Source: Octopus bimaculoides (Eukaryota). From it: 63,745 nt of DNA. This document shows positions 1-62,154 of the stretch, piece by piece. Position 1 is the stretch's first letter, and each line of letters starts with the position of its first letter. A program made the translations under genes and the position numbers. Below the pieces are notes generated by a model. It searched no databases. It was not told the DNA's origin and worked only from the letters and a program-made list of their open reading frames with translations. The stretch is taken from the NCBI RefSeq assembly GCF_001194135.2, contig NC_068982.1, positions 91,899,156 through 91,962,900 of the forward strand. The letters are read 5' to 3'.

Positions 1-265
1 TGTATCTAAAGCGTCCCCTTTACCTTTGTAGCAGTTGACTATGATGCTGCTACACCAGTCATAGGGTATGACTCCTTCGTGTATCACCTGGTTCGTAATA
101 CGGGTGACTAGGCTATAGCCAACACTGCCAGATATTTTGAGCATCTCTGCAGTGATTCCTGATGGGCCGGGGGCTTTCCCGGTCTTCATACTCTTAATTG
201 CTTTATCTACCCTGGTACTATCAACTCGGATAGCTGGTCCCTCTATTGGGTCGACATAAGGCAGG
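1..265 (-). mobile_element. RTE-X-like LINE fragment (pre-RT region)
   Basis: Translates to PIEGPAIRVDSTRVDKAIKSMKTGKAPGPSGITAEMLK...DWCSSIIVNCYKGKGDALD. Confidence 0.85.
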
Positions 266-539
266 CTCTCTTTCTCCCACATGTATGTATGTATGTATGT
301 ATGTATGTATGTATGTAGTTAATATATCCAAAAAGAGGCATATTCTAAGCACTTTATAGGTGCGAAACTAATGGTCACTTTACGACCGACCATAAGAAAC
401 AACCTTCCGAGCTCTGGTAACAGATACCTGTTCCCTCACATGATTGGGTTTTCCTCTAAATCTCATATGTGAAACCAGTTAGGGGAAAACCCAATCCTGT
501 ATGGCAACAGGTGTCTGCTACTGAAACTCAAAAAGTGTC

Positions 540-910
540 AAATCTGCTTTGGGGATGATAAATAAAATGGATCAGCCACGTTATCAGGATGCCTGATAAT
601 AGTTTCCTGAAAATAGTCTTCTTTGGAGAGCTATCAACTGGTGTTTGCTCACATGGGGGACCCAAGAAGAGGTTCAGGGACAATCTTGAACTTGCCCTCA
701 ACTCCTGCAAACATTCAACCAGCACAACTTGAACACTTTGTTCAGAACTGGTAAACCTGGCATTCCCTCTGTGATGAAGGAGCTGCACACTTTGAACTAA
801 TCCAACATGAGAAACTTGAGGAAAAGAGACATCAACTCTCAAACTCACGAACAACATAATGGGAAACTTCCTTTGTCATCTGTGTTCAAGGACATGCCAC
901 TCCAGGAATG
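540..910 (+). mobile_element. Degraded RTE LINE 3' end
   Basis: WISHVIRMPDNSFLKIVFFGEL...GGPKKRFRDNL and terminal CHLCSRTCHSRNGLFSHL zinc knuckle, with frameshifts. Confidence 0.8.
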
Positions 911-1671
911 GACTGTTTTCACATCTATCAACTCATAAAATGTGTGATAAGACTCCTAAAGAACAATGTCATCATCAACATTGACAGACAGTTATAAGCA
1001 TGTAAGTAAGTGATAATCATATTGCAGCCCAGCAGTATCCAAACAAACATCTCCTTTCTGGCAGACAGCACCATGATTATAAGTGTTAGAGGTTCCACCC
1101 TCAGGACACACCCACCATTAAAATCTGAGGGTTCAGCACAAACATATACATACATGTACACATACATATCCACATATGATTTTTAAGATTAAATACCCAC
1201 CCATTCCCATTTTCCATACCACCACCACCTTCCCAGCACACACACACACACACACACACCATACCACCACCCACACCCAAGTCCCAACCTCAGGCAGATA
1301 CCCCTTACATTTTGAAGACATTCTATCCTTTGTGCAAGGGTCATAAATCCAGATGAATTGCCTCTGAACTTCTCTTGCAGGTTTTTCCATTGCAGTTTTT
1401 CACAGTATCTCCAAGCCGGACATGACACTTCCTGATCTCAAGTAACAGAGAGTCATTATCATATCCCTCTGACCAAGTCTTCTGCTGAGTACCCGGATTT
1501 GGATTTTTCCATAACTCATATGAACAAAACTGAAAAGAAAATCACTTGAAATAGCTCCACAATGTATTGTATGAATATCAATAATCTACTCTATTGACAA
1601 ATACACAAGTTCCTGTTTGCTGACTTGTGGTTTCTGCAACTATATAAATGAATAAATAAATAAATAAATGA

Positions 1672-1740: not shown

Positions 1741-1960
1741 ATCATCATCATCATTTAATGCCCACTTTCTGTGCTAACATGAGTTTGACAGTTTGACTGG
1801 AACAGGTGAGCTGGAAGGCTGCACCAGACTCCAGTCTGATTTAGCATGGTTTCTACAGCTGGATGCTCTTCCTAATGCCAACCACTCCAAATATGTAATG
1901 AGTGCTTTTTGCGTGCCACCAGCACAGGTGCCATTTACATGACACTGGTAACGGCCACAA
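1741..1960 (-). mobile_element. RTE-X 3'-tail-type SINE/LINE remnant with (GAT)n tail
   Basis: Contains the gctggatgc..ttcctaa.gccaaccact core found more than 10 times in the window. Confidence 0.8.
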
Positions 1961-2269
1961 TATATGTGTGTGTGTGTGTATAGTTTAAAGATCTAATAGA
2001 GTTAGAATCTACAAAAAAAGTATTCCACCTAGAGAGAGAGATAAATATCAATTTAAATACACAGCCAAAAGAGCTACTAATACTTTCATGCTTTTATGAT
2101 ACTTGAACAAGTATATTTATAAAGTACACCATGTATCTTAAAGCCTGAATGATTGCTTTAAGGTACATGACTTATTTTATATATATGCCTGTTTAAGTAT
2201 CATAAAAAGCATGAAACTATTAGTAGCTCTTCTGATTGTGTATTCTGTCTTCATCCCTAATCTTTCTCT

Positions 2270-2880
2270 CTCCAGCCACGTAACCTTGTACTTCCTCTAC
2301 AGTAAGACACCTATATCTGTCTCACTATAACCTTTTCCTCATCCCCTCCTCCAATGCCCCCTCCTCTCTTTAAAGTTTTTGTCTTGCAAGTACTTGGTGA
2401 CCCTGTCAGTGCAGGTACCACTTAAAAGCACCCAGTCCACACTGTAAAGTGGTTGGTGTTCGGAAGGGCATCCAGCTGTAGAAACTCTGCCAAAACTGAC
2501 CTTACCTGTGCTTGTGCCACATTAAAAGCACTACTCACCTCGCCTGTACTCGTGCCACATAAAAAGCACTAAGTCCACTCTGCTGAGTGGTTGGTGTTAG
2601 GAAGGGCATCCAGCTGTAAAAATCCTTCCAAAACAGTTACAGAAATCCAGTGCAGGCTTCGGCCTGACTGGCTCTTGTAGTACCATCCCACCCATGCTAG
2701 CATGGAACATGGATGTTAAATGATGTGTTGTAAGAAGTCTGCTTCCCAACTTCATGGATTTAGGTTCAGTCTTGCAGTATGACAACTGAAAGGCAAGTGT
2801 CTTCTACTATCTCCTAAGGTTGACCAAAACCTTATGAGAGGATTTGAGAGACAGAAACTGTAAGAAGCCTGTTGTGTGCA
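2270..2880 (+). mobile_element. Composite RTE-X-tail repeat followed by tRNA-type SINE head
   Basis: 2270-2725 is closely related to 53985-54352; 2725-2880 matches the gcttcccaac...ttctactat...gaaactg SINE head. Confidence 0.7.
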
Positions 2881-2899
2881 TGCACCTGTTTATGTGTGT

Positions 2900-3120
2900 G
2901 TGTGTGTAATCTGGATATAGAAGCTGGTGGTTTCAAAATATGTCCATAGTTATCCTCTTTCTTTTTAATTTTCAAAAAGACATTCACATCAACAGGACAG
3001 CTGACTTCTATGGTGATACATAGTTTTTCTTGTCTGTTCAAGCAACAATATCCAACCTGCTTTGTTTACACTTGACACATGCTTTGATGGGAATATTCCA
3101 CCAGTATTATATTGTAAATT
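2900..3120 (-). mobile_element. R4/Dong-like RLE LINE 3' fragment
   Basis: IEVSCPVDVNVFLKIKKKEDNYG, homologous to 50430-50500. Confidence 0.7.
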
Positions 3121-4080
3121 CCCTAGTTATAACTTCTAGTATTAATAATTAAATACTGATTTTTAATTTCTATAATTCAAAGCATAAATCATAGATACTT
3201 TAACTATGTACCACATGACCATGACGAAATTCACTCTGTTTACATAACTTATGTAGAGGTGACTTACAATATAATTCATAAGTGATTAAAAAACTTTGCT
3301 GACATTTTGTACTCTCACAAGTAATAATGATAATTAGGGATAAATGTTTTTAATTACAACTGACTGTATCAAAATATTGTTTAGGCAACCTAATGGTTCC
3401 TTTGTTTTTCAACACATTAACACCTGCACACACACAAATAGATTAAAACAAATGTACGTATACATAAATAACATTCTTTTAAATACATATGATTGCACAA
3501 ATGCACATATCAAAACTTAATGCTGAGTCTACCAATGATATATCAACACACTGGGATGTAGTTTAAAAATATTTTTTTTATCAAGTTCTGACCCTGATGA
3601 AATGTTCAATTAACTATAATCCAATATGAACCTTTAATTTAATTTTTCTAATTTAAATTAATTGATTGGACATGGAAACAATTGTAGGTTCTATGAGTTT
3701 GATATTGTTCAAAATTGGATTTGTTTCAATAAATTGATGTCTATATGTCAATTTCTCCATTTTCTTATTTTNNNNNNNNNNNNNNNNNNNNNNNNNNNNN
3801 NNNNNNNNNNNNNNNNNNNNNNNNNNNNNNNNNNNNNNNNNNNNNNNNNNNNNNNNNNNNNNNNNNNNNNNNNNNNNNNNNNNNNNNNNNNNNNNNNNNN
3901 NNNNNNNNNNNNNNNNNNNNNNNNNNNNNNNNNNNNNNNNNNNNNNNNNNNNNNNNNNNNNNNNNNNNNNNNNNNNNNNNNNNNNNNNNNNNNNNNNNNN
4001 NNNNNNNNNNNNNNNNNNNNNNNNNNNNNNNNNNNNNNNNNNNNNNNNNNNNNNNNNNNNNNNNNNNNNNNNNNNNNNNN

Positions 4081-4498: not shown

Positions 4499-7400
4499 CT
4501 GGATAATATTGAGCATACATAAAAGATTCTGAGAAACATATATTTATAAAACACTTAAGATGATAGCATGGAATATTCATTTAAACATTTATTGTTTGTG
4601 ATATAAGTATCAAAATTTTCATAGCTCAGAACTGCAACCTGATTACTGACAATAAATGTTTAAGGGAAATTAAGAGGATTTTTTTTTTTATGGTTCTGAA
4701 TGGCTAACACTTGTCTTCCATGCTGCAATTGTTTTAGTTTTAACACAAGATCTAGATCAAAACACTTGCCATGCAAGTACATCTTCATAAACATAAGATT
4801 AAACAATTCAAGTATAGTGGGGTGTGACTTAAGGAAATTGCACTTATCAAAAATAGAACTTACGAAGGTTAGAAAGAAATGAAGTAAGCATAACCTACTG
4901 CATATATATTTATAATAATCCAGTGTATGCAACTGAAGCATTATTAAATTAAAATTGTTATCTATGCATCATATATATACACTGTTGATAGGTAAGTTAC
5001 TGCAGCTTTCATCTAAGATAAGATCCCTTATAGCTGTGTTATTTTTCAAAACACAGTATATATCGGAGAGAGATAAAAAGACAAAAAAAAAATCATTTGT
5101 TTTTTTTTATCAGTTTGACCTGGGAAATGGCCTTTAAGCTTTTAATGACTAGTGAGGGTGATATGGTTGCTTTCTTCAACAACTGCAAGAAAAGATTGCA
5201 GAGAGAATGCCAGATGCATTTCAGACTACTTGAGCTTTATCAGTAACGTGTATTTTCAGCCAGCCACATACCCAGGTGAGATTTGTCATCTCCAGGATAG
5301 GAAACAGAATTACACATGCAATGGTATCGTGCATGATAGAATTACATGTGCACTGGTATCATGAATAACTACTGAAATTTTATCTCAAATGAAAACCATA
5401 AAACCATTGCAACTTGCCTGTCAACAATGTATATATTAACTAGGTTACATAGAGAGCTATTTCAATTGGATACTGCTTCAATTATGCACACTAGATTATT
5501 CACTCAGCCCCATGGCTATTTGTAATACCACTGTTTCCTACATTGGAGACAACAAATCTCATTCAGGCAAGTATGTGTTAGTCACTGCTAGCAAGAATTT
5601 CGTCACCATTTGATAGTGTTTTTAAACACAGCACAGCCATAAGAGATTTTATCTTGAACAAATACCACAGCAACTTGCCTGTCAAGTGTGTATACATGGA
5701 TGTATATTTACAATGTCATTTAAACTTATAGCCAAGTTGTCCAACTTACTTAGGTGTTGGATTACTTAGTCAAATTCTCTGTTGGTATTCATGTCTGGTC
5801 AGCCCTCTTTGTTTCAAGCTAAATCTGAACCAGTTCATTAGAGAAACAAAATAGACAGGTAAATAAGAACTGGACAATCAGCTCACATATTGTGATTCCA
5901 ATCTACTGCAAGCATAATTTTATGTAATTTTCAGCAACAATTTTAGCTGCTCCAGTATACCTCACTGTTGAGAATAGCCATTTGATCATGTAGGAATGTT
6001 ATACATGATAGACTAGTAGTCTGTCTAGTGGGAGATTTATCTCTCATCCGCCAATAACTATGAAACCACAGCTATACACCAGTCTGTAAGAACTCCTTGA
6101 GGATACAGGAGTCATTTGCATAGTATACTAAATATCTTTTTTCAACTATTAACTATGCAACATATACATGGCATCTATTTTCAACTAGGTAAACTGAGAA
6201 GATTAGAATCATAATGTTTTGCCAGGGAACAAAATACAATATTTTCCGAATTGTCAACCTGTTTGTAATATCAACCAAATTCTCTCAAAATCTGTCCTAG
6301 AAAAGGAAGGTCATATTGAACAATGATTGTTATACAAAAGATATACAAAAAGATGGCATAGTCACTGCTGATTGAATACAGCTGCTTGTCCATAGCTCTG
6401 CTCAGTTAAACAACAACAACAGCACAATACAATACATATAGTAAATTGTAGACTCTTGGCTGCAGTTTCTATTTGAACATCATCAGTAGAAGTAAATGTG
6501 GAGTTGGTTATCTTATTTAAAAGTCAGTTCACTTGATGCATTCACCTCATCTCATCTTCCTCTCCTCATCCCTGTCTCAACTCCCAGCGCTAAATACTTT
6601 GGGGATTCAAAACCAAAAAAGGAGTCTTTACATGGTAGCTCAACCTCCGAGAAATAACAGCCAAATCTCTCACTATGCTCTCTTAGAAAAGAACACATTT
6701 GAAAATGTGATTTTAAGTGCATTTTATTTATGAAAATGACAGGATACCAAAACTTAAATGCCTTTAATCATAGCTTCGCTTGATCAGGACTGACCTAGGG
6801 CTAAACAACAACAACTACTTTCCTCCTCAGAGCTGCAACTCACTGGAACTTTTACTCTGCTTCTGTTTTCCTTACACTTACTCCTTACTCACTCATTTCT
6901 CCACTTGTTATCCATATTGTATCCACCATCATTTCACACCTCTGTCCCAGTCCACTCAAGTTTTCCCTCTAACCCCTAAATTCACCCAGTTCTTTCTCTT
7001 CAGTACCTCATTCCTCTTGAATTTCTTCTCTCTGCAATCTTTTCTTGCAGTTGTTGAAGAAAGCAACCATATCACCCTCACTAGTCATTAAAAGCTTAAA
7101 GGCCATTTCCCAGGTCAAACTGATAAAAAAAAAAAAACATATACAAGAAACCTATGGAAGCTCAAACTCAAAAAATCAGCCTGACTGACTTCACCAGTCT
7201 TGAAGTGAGAACTGAAAGGTCATGGGTGTTATTTCCCCTATTCCAAGTGATTGATAAGAAAATTGTTTGTACACTTAATTATATACATTCTAATATTTAG
7301 TTTCATCTCTCTGAATTCAAATCTTGCCAAGGTTGTCTTTGCCTTTCTTCCTAGGATCAATACAAGTAGCATGATAGAACTAGTTATTAATAATAATTTT

Positions 7401-16073: not shown

Positions 16074-19000
16074 CTATGAGAGAAAGAGAGGGGAGAAGGT
16101 AAGAGAAAGTGAAATGAAGACAGAAAGGAAGAAAGAAAGAAAAAAAGCACTTATGACTGAACACTACTTTTCTGTATTGTTGCTAGGGTGGGGCAATGGT
16201 GTTAGTCTTCTCCAGACAGCACATTTGGGTCGCCTGTATAAGCTAGTATAAACTTTGGGACCTGAGTGGGGGGAGGCAAACCCAAGGGCTACTCTAACTA
16301 TGTCACTCGTACTTCTTAAACGTCTTTTAACTATTACCCCTTTTCTTTTTACTAGTATGATTTCATCACACCTTTGTTATGATTCAATATTACCCTCTTC
16401 CATTTTTAATGTACATGCACATTATTTCAGACTAGAGTGATTTTGTTCCAGGTATTAATATGACATAAGTAACTAAGGCGGCAAGTTGGCAGAATTGTTA
16501 ACACGCTGGGCAAAATGCTTAGCAGCATTTCGTCCATCTTTACATTCTGAGTTCAAATGCCACCAAGGTCAACTTTGCCTTTCATCCTTTTGGGATCAAT
16601 AAAACAAATACCAGCTGCATACTGGGGGTCAATGTAATTGACTTAGCTCCTTCCCTGAAACTGCTGGCCCTGTGCCAAAATTTGAAACCAATATGATATA
16701 GGTGACTACTTACCAAAGCATTACCCTAATATAAGCAAATACCATAAGAATTGATGGAATATTTTTGATTTTGTTTAATTATTCACATTTCAAAATTTAT
16801 TATTATTGTTGATGTTATGGTAACTGTTATTGTCATTGTTGTTATTGTGATTGACAAACCGGAAAGACAGTTAGGCATCTTGGAAAGACAAGAGGACTGC
16901 TCAGAAAGACGAGTGGACAATAGGAAAGACTATCGACACCAGGAGAGACTGGCGGAGGCTGCGGACTTACAATCCTCACCTTTGTAATATATTTTAACAA
17001 CTACAAATGAGAATGACAGCCCCACGATTGACTGAGAGGGGGGAGTCGAGAATCAATCAAACCCAGTTAACACGGAAATGACCTTGGACACAAGTACGGC
17101 TATTCATTCGAACACCGAACGAAGTGCAAACAACTTTGGATGCAAGCTGTGCTGTAGAACCTTTGCAACTGTGAGAGGCTTGAAGATACATCAGGGAAAG
17201 ACTTGTGAGAAGAAGACAGAGCAGTGTGGATCATCTGATCGTAAAACATGTGGCAAATCATCCCCGGACTCAAACCACAGTGGATCGATAAATGCTACAG
17301 CAAAGACCTCTTCCTGTCAGGTAGTACTCAGAGGTGCATCAGGTAGTACTCGGAGGAAACCGAGGGTTTTGTGGCCTGCTGCTAATGAGAAAGGGAAATA
17401 TAAAGAGTTTGAAAACAAGGTGTGTTGAGCTCTTTATAAAATTACAGGCTCTACAGTGGAGAAACTGGGAAAATTAACAAGCTCAATTCATGACACAGGG
17501 AAGGAATTGTTTGGAATGAAAGAGAGTATCCGATTAGAGAAAGGAAAGCGTAGACCAAACAGGAGGATCAGGAAAATGAAACAGTTGAGGAAGGAAAAGA
17601 CCAGCCTAAGAAAGCGATGGAAATGTGCTGCAAGAGATGAAAAACCTGGCCTCGTGCTGCTGTATAACGATTTGAAAAGGAAATGTCGTTATGCGCAACG
17701 GCATATCCGCCGATATGAGCATCGAAAGAAGAGTAAAAGGACTCAGGGACAGTTTCTGAAGAACCTGTACAGGTTTACTAAGAAGCTGTTCACTGAACCG
17801 AAGAGTGGTTCTTTATCGTGCACGAAAGAAGAATTGGACGCTCATATCAAAGAAACCTACAGCAATTCGCACCGTAACCAGCCAGTGCTTAATGATTTAG
17901 CCACTACATGATTTAGCCACTACATGATTTAGCCACTACATGATTTAGCTACTACATGATTTAGCCACTACATGGGCTAAATCATCTCTCAGAACCTGAT
18001 ATCGAATTCCAAATTGGGGACATCAGAGAGAGAGAGGTGAATGATTTTCGTAAGAAAAGCTAGAGCAAAGAGTGCCCCAGGAGGTGATGGCATCTCATAT
18101 AAAGTTTATAAATATTGCAATCGTCTGTGAAAGAAGCTCTTTGTCCTATTCCGACAGTTGTGGCACAAAGAGACTCTAGTAGAGGATTGGTGTAAGGCAG
18201 AAGGTATATACCTGCCAAAGGAGGCCAATGCAAAGACTTTAAAACAGTTTAGGCTGATATCCTTATTGAATGTGGAAGGCAAGATCTTTATGGGAATTCT
18301 TTCGAGGAGAACAGTGACATATTTACAGAGTAATGGATATGTTGATGAATCTGTTCAAAAGGCCAGAATCCCTGGGATCCCTGGATGCGTTGAACACTGC
18401 TTTTTGATTTGGAAAGTGATCCAAGATGCCAAACAGAACAAGAGAAGTTTGAACGTGGTATGGCTTGACCTAGCTAATGCACATGGCTCAGCACCACACG
18501 AATTACTGATAAGAGTCATGGACCACTTCTACATTCCAGACAAAGTGATCAAAATAATGAGGATGTACTATGACAGTTTCGAAATGAGGTTTACAGCTGG
18601 AGATTTTACAACAGATTGGCACCGATTGGAGATTGGTATTGCTGCTGGCTGTACAATATCTGTCACGTGGTTTATCTTAGTCATGGAGATGATTTTGAAA
18701 GCGGTGGATTTTTCGGAACAAATCGCCCATGCACCATCGCCTAAGAATGCCTTCATGGATGACATGACACTTCTAGCTACAGATAAACAAATCATGCAGA
18801 ATGCCCTCTTGAGACTAGACAAACTTGTGAGGTGGTCAAGGATGCAGTTTAGAGCAAAAAAGTCATGTAGTCTGACATTTGTTAAGGGAGTGCAGAAAGA
18901 ATTTAAGTTTCGAATAGCAGAAGAAAGCATTCCAACAGTCAAAGAAGAACCCATCAAGAGCTTGGGGTGTGTATACGCTGGAACATTGTCAGATAGAAGT

Positions 19001-22000
19001 CGCAAAATGGAAATTATGAAACAAGCCGAGGCTGGATTATCAGCGATTGATAACTCGAAGTTACCAGGTAACTATAAAATTTGGTGCTTGCAGTTCGGTT
19101 TGTACCCGCGACTTTCATGGCCACTCTTAATATATGAGGTATCCTTGTCACGAGTTCAAATCATTTAACAAAAATGTAATGTGTTCATTAGAAAGTGGCT
19201 AGGCCTACCTCGGATGTTGAACAGTTCAGCTCTTTATCGTAAAAGAGGTTTGTTGCAGTTACCACTAGCGTCAATAGTCGAAATATACAAACTAGGGAAG
19301 ATACAGACGGTGATGATGCTGAGAGAATCGAAGGACATGGAAATCAGGCGTAACCCACCAGAGGTGAAAACAGCCAGGAAGTGAAAAGCAGAAGCAGAGG
19401 CTGATGACATCTTGTCTTCTCTTATACACAGAGATATGGTGGGTGCAACACAGAACCATTGGAGAGGACTTGGTTTTGGCACAGATCAGTTCAGGCTGTT
19501 TGCAAGTATGATGCGGAGCAAACACAGATCTGTTGTTAGCAACAGTATCAAAACAAGAGAAGCAGAGAAAAGAGAGCTTCATTTGATCACATGTAGTCAA
19601 CAAGGACAGATGAAGAGATGGGAAGAACATGTTGTTGAGAGGAAAATACGTTGGGATGAGATATGGAAGTGGACGACATCTCGGCTAAGTTTTCTCATTC
19701 GTTCATCTTATGATGTTTTGCCGTCACCTACGAATCTAGTATGATGGAATGTCTCAGAAAATGACATATGCTAATGCGGAATGGTCGGAACACTGAAACA
19801 TATTCTTTCCAACTGTCCCTTAGCATTGAATAGGTATACATGGAGACACAACCTGGTCCTGAAGGTTATCTTCAATGCTATGAAGAACCAAATTCATCTC
19901 AACAACACTGAGAAAAAACAGTTGAAAGTACCATCTAGAGATTTTATTACCTTCGTGCCATCAGGTCAGCGGATCCGTTTCAAGAAGAACAAGATACTTC
20001 CTGTGAGAGATGAAAAGTGGAACAGCTATTGGGAAGTGACTGCAGATTTACCTGGGTGCCAAGGATTCTTTCCCATCCCAGTTATGGAAAAACCAGACAT
20101 TTTAATGTGGTGTGAAAGAAGGAAAGTTGTAAATCTAGTTGAGTTAACGGTTCCTCATGAAGATAACATGGACGCCACGTGGGCTCGTAAGATTGACCAT
20201 TATGTAAACCTCCTCGAGAAATGTGAAGACGCAGGCTGGAAAGCAGAGCATTTTCCAATCAAAGTTGGATGTAGAGGGTTTGTTGGACAGTGTGAGATGA
20301 CTGTTGTTATCGTTAGTCCTAACTCATCGTAAGGTAATTACCACCATGACCGATATCCAAAATACAGTGGAGAAGGCTAGCCACTGGATTTGGTTAAAAA
20401 GAGACGATGAGCGATGGCTAGAGAAATATTGAGCTTTGTTTTTAATAACCAGTTGATCTAGCAAGCGGGGTCTCATATCAGTGAGGAGGGGGGGCACATT
20501 GATGCCGTCGAGTGGTAGGCCCCAAAACGGCGCGCATTCTCTCCTGATGACCTCATACACTTGCTGGCTTCCGGTATGCAGAGTTCTCGACTGGTAGCAC
20601 TTGCATGTGCATGTTGTTTGCAAGACATCTATAATATTACATTAAAGTTTTGGTAAATTTATTGAAGAACACGCATCTCAACCCCAATGAAAAGTAATTA
20701 TTTCTCTTTGCTTCTTTCATGTGCTAACAACTAATCTGACCTCTGAACATGCAATAAAGGACATTTTTCCCCAGAAAATGAAAGGAGATGGTGAGATGGG
20801 ACTGTTGAAATTCAGAAACAACTAACTTTGTAGAAAAAGGAGACGGGAAGGTGAGGGCTGAAAGACCACTGGAGTTTTGAAGGCTTATATGCATTCGGTA
20901 GGAAATTATATTCTTGGTATTTTTTTTTTTTTATTGTTGAATTATTATCAATGAATCTGACCTTCAAACATGTTGCAAATGACCATTTGTTTTTTTTGGG
21001 GGGAGGGGGAGAATGACAAACCCTCTGATCTCTCCATACACACATGCACATTTCAGAGTTTTCTTGTTTTTTTTACAATATTTCTTTTTTATAAGTGTTA
21101 TCAATGAATGATCTTCAAAACAGTTAGTAATTATTCATGTCTTTGTTACATGAGTGGGTGGGGATGGTGTTTTCTCTGCAATTAGAACCGTCTTGCATTG
21201 GAGGTGCAATTTTTTTCTGGGTATTTTGGTGTATATTCAATGCATAAAAGCTGAACATTAGAAGCATCAGTTGTGGTGTGCAAGAGAGACGATTGCGCTG
21301 GTATGGACATGTGGTGAGAATGGATGAGGATAGCTGCGTGAAAAAGTGCCACACCCTAAGAGTTGAGGGAACCCGTGGAAGAGGTAGGCCCAGGAAGACC
21401 TGGGCTGAGGTGGTGAGGCAAGACTTTCGTACATTGGGCCTCACCGAGGCGATGACTACTGACCGAGACCTTTGNNNNNNNNNNNNNNNNNNNNNNNNNN
21501 NNNNNNNNNNNNNNNNNNNNNNNNNNNNNNNNNNNNNNNNNNNNNNNNNNNNNNNNNNNNNNNNNNNNNNNNNNNNNNNNNNNNNNNNNNNNNNNNNNNN
21601 NNNNNNNNNNNNNNNNNNNNNNNNNNNNNNNNNNNNNNNNNNNNNNNNNNNNNNNNNNNNNNNNNNNNNNNNNNNNNNNNNNNNNNNNNNNNNNNNNNNN
21701 NNNNNNNNNNNNNNNNNNNNNNNNNNNNNNNNNNNNNNNNNNNNNNNNNNNNNNNNNNNNNNNNNNNNNNNNNNNNNNNNNNNNNNNNNNNNNNNNNNNN
21801 NNNNNNNNNNNNNNNNNNNNNNNNNNNNNNNNNNNNNNNNNNNNNNNNNNNNNNNNNNNNNNNNNNNNNNNNNNNNNNNNNNNNNNNNNNNNNNNNNNNN
21901 NNNNNNNNNNNNNNNNNNNNNNNNNNNNNNNNNNNNNNNNNGGCTTGTGCGGGTGGCACATAAAAGACACCATTTCGAGCGTGGCCGTTTTCGTGCGGGT

Positions 22001-61700: not shown

Positions 61701-62154
61701 GGAATAAATGTGGTGATAATTTTAGTATGCATAGCAAAACAAAAGTGCTTTTGCTACTCTTGGCCTCCGTAGGATGCCCAGTACTAAGGCAGCTGAAATA
61801 AAATTATAATGAAAGGAAACCATAAATGATAATAATGATCATAATAATGGTTTCAAATTTTGCCACAAGGGCAGCAATTTGGGGGGAGGGGATGAGTCGA
61901 TTACATTAACCCCAGTACTTAACTGGTATTTAATTTATCAACCCTGAAAGGATGAAAGGCAAAGTCATCCTTGGCGGAATTTGAATTCGGAATGTAGCAA
62001 TGGGCAAAATACCGCTAAGCCTTCTGTCCAGCATGCTAATGATTCTGCCAGCTCACCACCTTAAGTAGCAGTAGTAGTAGTAGTAGTAGTAAGAATAATA
62101 ACAACAATAATAGTAGTAATAATAATAACAACAACAACAATAGTAATAATTTTA

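Follow-up and report, generated by a model that had tools for sequence, protein, structure and literature searches.

The window analysed here, a stretch of 63,745 nucleotides from the genome of Octopus bimaculoides (contig NC_068982.1), contains a retrotransposon without long terminal repeats (non-LTR) whose extreme 5' end carries a tandem array of short hairpins, each presenting nearly the same purine-rich loop. The element has one open reading frame (ORF) that codes, in this order, for an N-terminal CCHC-type zinc finger, a basic region, a reverse transcriptase (RT), a C-terminal zinc knuckle (Cys/His) and a PD..E.K restriction-like endonuclease. This ORF matches Pfam RVT_1, the closest solved structures to its product are R2 proteins (PDB 9nl3, 9dou and 8gh6), and the zinc finger, C..C..H..C, RPD, ELTVP and ERK columns are invariant or conserved when seven relatives are aligned. 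The best named homologue of the window protein is an O. bimaculoides protein with 87% identity. A single ORF with an N-terminal zinc finger, an RT, a C-terminal Cys/His knuckle and a PD..(D/E)xK nuclease is what marks the R2 superfamily, and from its sequence we place the element among the non-LTR retrotransposons of this superfamily that have a restriction-like endonuclease. The copy is considered dead because its ORF carries, among several lesions, 11 internal in-frame stops and a tandem repeat (16 bp x 5.2, ATGATTTAGCCACTAC, 17892-17974).

Five hairpins with a common loop at the 5' end of the octopus element

The array occupies positions 16857-16954 and consists of five hairpins (Table 1) with stems of 5-7 bp and loops of the form G-GARAGA-C, whose starts are spaced by 21/21/20/19 nt and which leave gaps of 1-5 nt between adjacent hairpins. 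A preliminary description of this DNA had reported five tandem hairpins with this extent and spacing, and all of them were found as reported. The letters common to the octopus units are those of the 8-mer G-GARAGA-C, and a Tandem Repeats Finder run on the window did not call the array, which fits units whose arms differ and that have only this core in common. Hairpin 1 is an extra unit compared to the other lineages described below and sits where these carry a 5'-terminal hairpin with a different, GGU-type loop.

This hairpin cluster is not due to chance. Five GARNGA hairpins with at least four of five flanking pairs are found inside 82 nt of the window, while 200 first-order Markov simulations of the window gave a maximum of two such hairpins per 100 nt. 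At stem positions 2-5 of the octopus units, 17 of the 20 cells are paired, a score that is unique to the true arm matching among the 120 possible ones, and the sense strand of the array folds into the hairpins at z = -2.5.

Table 1. Features of the octopus element (window positions) and of related elements (positions of head-to-tail tandems in each locus, with protein identity)
Feature	Position	Strand	Remarks
Hairpin 1	16857-16872	+	AACCG-GAAAGA-CAGTT; one C·A mismatch
Hairpin 2	16878-16893	+	TCTTG-GAAAGA-CAAGA; perfect stem; orthologue of array hairpin 1 of relatives
Hairpin 3	16897-16916	+	CTGCTCA-GAAAGA-CGAGTGG; two G·U pairs; closing pair A·C, G-C in relatives
Hairpin 4	16918-16935	+	CAATAG-GAAAGA-CTATCG; one A·C mismatch
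Hairpin 5	16937-16954	+	CACCAG-GAGAGA-CTGGCG; one A·C mismatch, G there in six relatives
Remaining structured 5' untranslated region	16955-17077	+	two further hairpins and a hairpin at 17015-17058
Element ORF	17078-20332	+	single ORF; dead copy
3' untranslated region	20333-20630	+	no poly(A); element end near 20630
L001, Aplysia californica	5400-5860		identity ~64% (RT/endonuclease), 47% (N-terminal)
L005, Tara Oceans contig	1-1130		identity 61%
L006	300-650
L010, Tara Oceans contig	1-275		identity 62%
L011, ENA metagenome	1-1400		identity 52%
L040, ENA metagenome (same sample as L011)	3480-3750		identity 51%
L041, Branchiostoma	3000-3490 and 7100-7290		identity 42%
L042-L045, Tara scaffold	1940-3000 (L042)		identity 40%

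The four mismatches in the octopus stems are all A·C and, as read from the sequence, each could be mended by a single CpA to CpG reversion. The outgroups have a G at the mismatch sites of hairpins 3 and 5; the hairpin 4 mismatch is left ambiguous by them, and no unit could be matched clearly to hairpin 1. In a comparison with a second octopus copy (L009), 46 CpG proved to be lost from the window copy and 8 from L009. The preliminary description had attributed the mismatches to CpG decay, an explanation that is supported by this imbalance and by the outgroup G at hairpins 3 and 5, and the closing A·C of hairpin 3 in particular reads as a decayed form of the G-C pair seen in relatives.

The array is kept in seven further lineages and lies inside the element

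Related elements were collected as DNA around homologous proteins, and the eight lineages sampled, octopus included, are those whose contigs happened to reach a 5' end. An alignment of the 5' ends of other copies, which the preliminary description had proposed as a check, recovered a four-hairpin GA-loop array at the 5' end of seven further lineages with ~40-65% protein identity (Table 1); no array was seen in one more lineage (L006-L008), which is considered below. The ORFs of the array-bearing relatives are intact (1062-1178 amino acids), except in Aplysia, where the reading frame is split. At another locus (L039, P0016), AT-rich unrelated DNA precedes the called gene and no element 5' end is found there.

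The arrays of the relatives have stems of 5-7 bp, gaps of 1-2 nt between adjacent hairpins and G-A-R-N-G-A loops, mostly G-C closed, with loop-start spacings of 21/20/19, 20/20/20 or 22/21/20. When aligned with MAFFT, the four units match column by column across the eight elements, and this agreement in order and spacing indicates that they form one orthologous four-hairpin array rather than independent local duplications. Loop letters G1, A2, G5 and A6 are conserved over 40% protein divergence. Conservation of sequence as such is limited to the 8-mer and a GAC linker; the arms, which are not the same from one unit to the next, covary.

The position of the array with respect to the element boundary could be read from copies joined in tandem. 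The 3' end of the Aplysia element (…GACTACGTA) is defined by three copies and that of the Branchiostoma element (…TTTTTTAAAC) by two, and at the tandem junctions the next unit begins immediately after this 3' end, with the first GA hairpin 22-33 nt further. The array thus lies inside the element, at its extreme 5' end, as the preliminary description had supposed. Every full-length copy of the other lineages is joined head to tail behind the 3' end of another copy (the Branchiostoma tandem unit measures ~3.9 kb); the window copy is solitary. These head-to-tail tandems may result from end-to-end template jumping or from the need of an upstream copy for transcription.

Compensatory changes point to a sense-strand RNA structure

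The units were anchored on the loop motif, and the permutation and slide controls that accompany the following numbers correct for this anchoring only in part. In the eight-sequence alignment, 80.6% of the stem cells are paired, compared to 62.3% after shuffling of the partners, and changes are seen on both sides of 14 of the 23 pairs; none of 500 shuffles reached either value. The covariation score of 0.447, also reached by none of 500 shuffles, falls to at most 0.138 when the partners are slid by 1-3 columns. A unit-level test gave a similar picture: arms of the same hairpin are complementary in 105 of 128 cells, against a mean of 59.7 after random reassignment (z = 9.6, 0/200,000), and pairing amounts to 82-85% for cognate arms against ~47% for swapped ones. 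The result on arm pairing was repeated with L011, L040 and L041 alone, three of the four most distant array-bearing lineages. RNAalifold found the hairpins unguided, and a covariance model of the arrays, when run over 215 kb on both strands, matched only arrays at element 5' ends. The preliminary description had read the differing stems as covariation rather than simple tandem duplication, and this reading is borne out by arms that differ and still pair and by an orthologous, covarying array in eight lineages.

The strand on which pairing matters can also be seen in these data. Sense strands fold at z = -2.0 to -4.6 in seven of the eight arrays, whereas antisense strands reach only -0.2 to -1.8 and lose hairpins. 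Among the non-Watson-Crick stem cells of intact elements, G·U occurs 10 times and A·C three times, an excess indicative of pairing on the sense strand. We also considered that the array may be coding, a possibility that was rejected since stops in frame with the ORF separate it from the array in all eight lineages and since the spacing of the units is not a multiple of three; within the window, the octopus array is open in the ORF frame. Altogether, the comparative pattern indicates that the array is a selected, sense-strand, non-coding RNA structure inside the element.

Comparison with known RNA elements

Searches against Rfam 15 at permissive thresholds returned nothing relevant for window positions 16300-21200 (E≤10) or for the seven junction-bearing loci (E≤5), and no hepatitis delta virus (HDV)-like, hammerhead, twister, pistol or hatchet ribozyme was matched at these thresholds in the same regions. 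Literature searches did not find a description of the array either. Its earlier presentation as undescribed agrees with both searches, and the array is a conserved RNA element not previously described in Rfam or in the searched literature.

By analogy, the closest known system in terms of role would be the R2 5' regulatory RNA. The 5' RNA of R2Bm is a multi-hairpin "three-claw" platform that binds the R2 protein and activates second-strand cleavage (bioRxiv 10.1101/2023.04.07.536001). Both are structured multi-hairpin 5' RNAs of single-ORF elements with a restriction-like endonuclease, and their proteins are related. The R2 RNA, however, measures ~300 nt, includes a pseudoknot besides elements that do not repeat, and extends in part into the ORF, whereas the array consists of four near-identical loops on short independent stems in ~85 nt.

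With the HDV-like ribozyme of R2 and other non-LTR elements, the array shares its place in the element and a setting in which the stability of the 5' fold matters for insertion (PMC11331408). Unlike that ribozyme, its hairpins are independent, no nested double pseudoknot (P1-P4) was found and Rfam gave no match. Repeated units at the 5' end of a non-LTR retrotransposon are also known from mouse LINE-1, where the tandem monomers act as internal promoters and are ~200 bp long, with a conserved DNA sequence and a copy number that varies; the array instead has 20-nt units that are not conserved as DNA along their whole length, with a conserved structure and with number and order fixed across phyla.

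Short stems of free sequence that show a conserved purine-rich loop, with repetition serving multivalency, are further known from phage boxB/N, MS2 operator arrays and bacterial CsrB/RsmZ. These analogies come from unrelated systems and organisms: boxB has GNRA-like pentaloops and GGA is found in the loops of CsrB, while the loop of the array is a GA(R)(N)GA hexa- or heptaloop. The loop core GGAAAGAC(C), found at 16861-16868 and in the other units, is also identical to bacterial 23S ribosomal RNA around A2058, the TLR13 ligand ACGGAAAGACCCCGU (PMC12887398), a likeness that we take as a coincidence.

Possible functions of the array

Considering that the loop letters are kept, that stem sequence is free and that the units have a fixed number and order, we tentatively favour, on the analogy with the R2 5' RNA and at somewhat less than even confidence, that the array is a cis-acting platform for multivalent protein binding, with the protein of the element itself as the most likely partner. 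The four orthologous stem-loops, to which octopus adds a fifth, are found within a few tens of nucleotides of the 5' end of the RNA and would then bind that protein, with the loops being the recognised part and the stems only presenting them, and the array would mark and hold the 5' end of the template in the ribonucleoprotein. The model for such a role is the R2 5' regulatory RNA, which captures the R2 protein and licenses second-strand cleavage.

A bolder version of this proposal, which we regard as possible but unlikely as a whole, is that the array represents an ancient, undescribed class of RNA module common to retrotransposons of molluscs and cephalochordates, in which four GA-loop hairpins would be read by the element's own protein to control the second half of integration, meaning here second-strand cleavage or synthesis, or end-to-end template jumping. 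If true, it would also explain why head-to-tail tandems of full-length copies are nearly universal in these elements. Recognition of the 5' end of the template and completion of the second strand are the least understood part of target-primed reverse transcription, and this also limits gene-insertion tools based on R2. The array could offer a small (~85 nt), modular and phylogenetically validated handle on these steps in R2 relatives that are not tied to ribosomal DNA; intact source elements exist, and the compensatory pattern shows which strand and which pairs are relevant. It would moreover supply RNA motif databases with a family that they lack and serve as a diagnostic 5' landmark when annotating full-length copies of the clade.

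Several observations weigh against a protein-binding platform. The hairpins are short and individually weak, and the array resembles the R2 5' RNA in neither sequence nor fold. The L040 array folds no better than its shuffles (z = -0.6), and in Branchiostoma and L042 pairing is poor in the third unit. Elements of one lineage (L006-L008, P0030, 54% identity) have a terminal hairpin followed by one long hairpin and no GA-loop array, and their ORF is intact, with the same N-terminal zinc finger and basic region as in array-bearing lineages. The protein hence does not strictly need the array, or uses another RNA. Since these elements are intact without it, the array is not indispensable for the whole clade and the module can be replaced. 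A link between the array and a particular protein domain was likewise rejected, given that the array-less lineage has the same N-terminal domains.

Among the alternatives to a protein platform, the one that survives best, although we still hold it to be rather unlikely, is that the array stabilises the 5' end or marks the end of the template. The hairpins would delay the degradation, from 5' to 3', of a template with no cap or a poor one or, in a variant of this idea, would impose on the reverse transcriptase a defined mode of finishing or jumping, with the loops left unread by any protein. A distance of 22-33 nt from the 5' boundary suits such a role, and thermodynamically stable 5' modules were shown to raise the efficiency of R2-based insertion, which the authors of that work interpreted as protection from 5' degradation (PMC11331408). 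The head-to-tail full-length copies in all seven other lineages would also, as we infer, fit template jumping. However, this explanation has no need for loop letters G1, A2, G5 and A6 to be conserved over such a protein divergence, and hairpins of 5-6 bp are weak barriers.

We consider it improbable that the array serves to recruit the ribosome or an RNA-binding protein of the host, be it to start translation of the single ORF independently of a cap or for export or localisation. Such a role could be consistent with an array that lies in the 5' untranslated region (UTR) upstream of the ORF in every lineage and that is kept across phyla, as a conserved host factor could be its reader, and the R2 protein itself is translated by a non-canonical, unknown mechanism (PMC13580325). 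What speaks against it is that the array resembles no internal ribosome entry site or cis-regulatory family in Rfam and that 14 to 239 nt separate it from the annotated start codon, depending on the lineage. As an argument for translation control this distance turned out to be unreliable: a conserved hairpin downstream of the array falls inside the called ORF in L040 and L042, so that these ORFs were probably called too far upstream and the short distances may be annotation artefacts.

Similarly doubtful is that the array functions as DNA, in the manner of an internal promoter or enhancer, with the 8-mer GGAAAGAC as a transcription factor site phased by its recurrence at intervals of about two helical turns, comparable to the tandem 5' monomers of some LINEs. 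The 8-mer and the GAC linker are indeed the only conserved sequence, the units recur at 19-22 bp, or nearly two helical turns, and the array is placed at the 5' end, the usual location of internal promoters in non-LTR elements. A duplex site nevertheless does not explain the compensatory changes in the arms, the excess of G·U over A·C or the asymmetry between sense and antisense folding. A promoter role at the DNA level could coexist with a role of the RNA, and the stability, translation or host-factor and promoter roles could also coexist.

It is very improbable that the array is part of a self-cleaving ribozyme which, like the HDV-like ribozyme of R2, would free the element's 5' end from transcripts that read through or span a tandem. 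The array is placed as that ribozyme is, the usual head-to-tail tandems would need processing, and a conserved CCCC/GGGGGG pseudoknot candidate lies downstream, but the Rfam searches described above matched no ribozyme family, and a catalytic core is not built from simple independent hairpins. In a hammerhead, CUGANGA stands between helices I and II and GAAA between helices II and III, around a three-way junction. CUGANGA is missing from the array, and the hammerhead-like letters of the 3' UTR are wrong in order and spacing, with CCGAAAY located 16-26 nt before CUGAHGA, that is in reverse order and with too little room for two helices. A hammerhead or HDV-like ribozyme in the array, the junction or the 3' UTR was therefore rejected.

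Finally, a neutral minisatellite or chance cluster of palindromic units, which the ~20-nt periodicity and purine-rich core could recall, can practically be dismissed: in eight lineages the orthologous units keep their order and spacing and their stems change in a compensatory manner, the simulations had a maximum of two such hairpins per 100 nt, and Tandem Repeats Finder made no call.

Other features of the element and of the window

Downstream of the array, the hairpin at 17015-17058 reads GACAGCCCC-ac-[GATTGA]-CTGAGAGGGGGGAGTCGAGAA-[TCAATC]. Its stem covaries and its G-rich loop is kept in Aplysia, the Tara contigs, Branchiostoma (GAAAGAGGGGGGAGGA) and L042, and the conserved candidate CCCC/GGGG pseudoknot mentioned above lies at 17020-17045. 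A metagenome scan for the conserved loop CYGAGAGGGGGGAGTNGAG gave 27 loci, essentially chance or bacterial matches, with two exceptions (L012 and L033) that are possibly related and are both cut by a contig end. At L012 137-155 (minus strand) and L033 12982-13000, CTGAGAGGGGGGAGTCGAG is preceded by a hairpin, GTTGTCA-GAGAGAA-TGACAAC, and may represent a further relative of this 5' UTR. Another repeat, with CCGAGAGGGGGGAGTAGAGGTATAGCTCTAC in common, was found in metagenome contigs L016, L020 and L025 and is unrelated to the array.

The 3' end of the octopus element, without poly(A), was fixed near 20630 by the second octopus copy, L009, which is 5'-truncated at window position 17286; Logan contigs L003 and L004 begin only at window positions 17147-17160. 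The 3' UTR has a core at ~20468-20550 that is composed of a covarying GGSCC/GGSCC helix, CCGAAAY, 16-26 nt and CUGAHGA (CUGAUGA at 20544-20550), and this core is invariant in ten sequences from eight lineages (alignment A6). We think that it is probably an RT-binding 3' element. Its letters recall a hammerhead or a kink-turn, in an order that is wrong for a hammerhead and without an Rfam match. A kissing interaction between a GAGAGA loop and UCUCUC just before the CUGAUGA of the 3' UTR was also considered and discarded, as this complement is found only in octopus, Aplysia, L005 and L010 and is absent from the 3' UTRs of L011, L040, L041 and L042.

The label HERO for this element is plausible; relatives in Branchiostoma and fish and a lack of target specificity are compatible with it. 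The HERO clade is mostly not site-specific, with some families targeting microsatellites (PMC4640811). When two Aplysia copies and two octopus copies were compared, their 3' flanks were unlike each other, and no target-site duplication was seen at the window element. A TTATTG-like microsatellite (16797-16853) directly adjoins the 5' end of the element, in this single case.

Two copies of a SINE-like short interspersed repeat, 79% identical, are located at 16606-16697, just upstream of the element, and at 61841-61931 on the minus strand. Beyond the 3' end of the element, a fragment of another RT-type ORF (21278-21470, …RRLRWYGHVVRMDEDSCVKK…) ends in an assembly gap, a run of N (21475-21941) that is one of eight such runs in the window.

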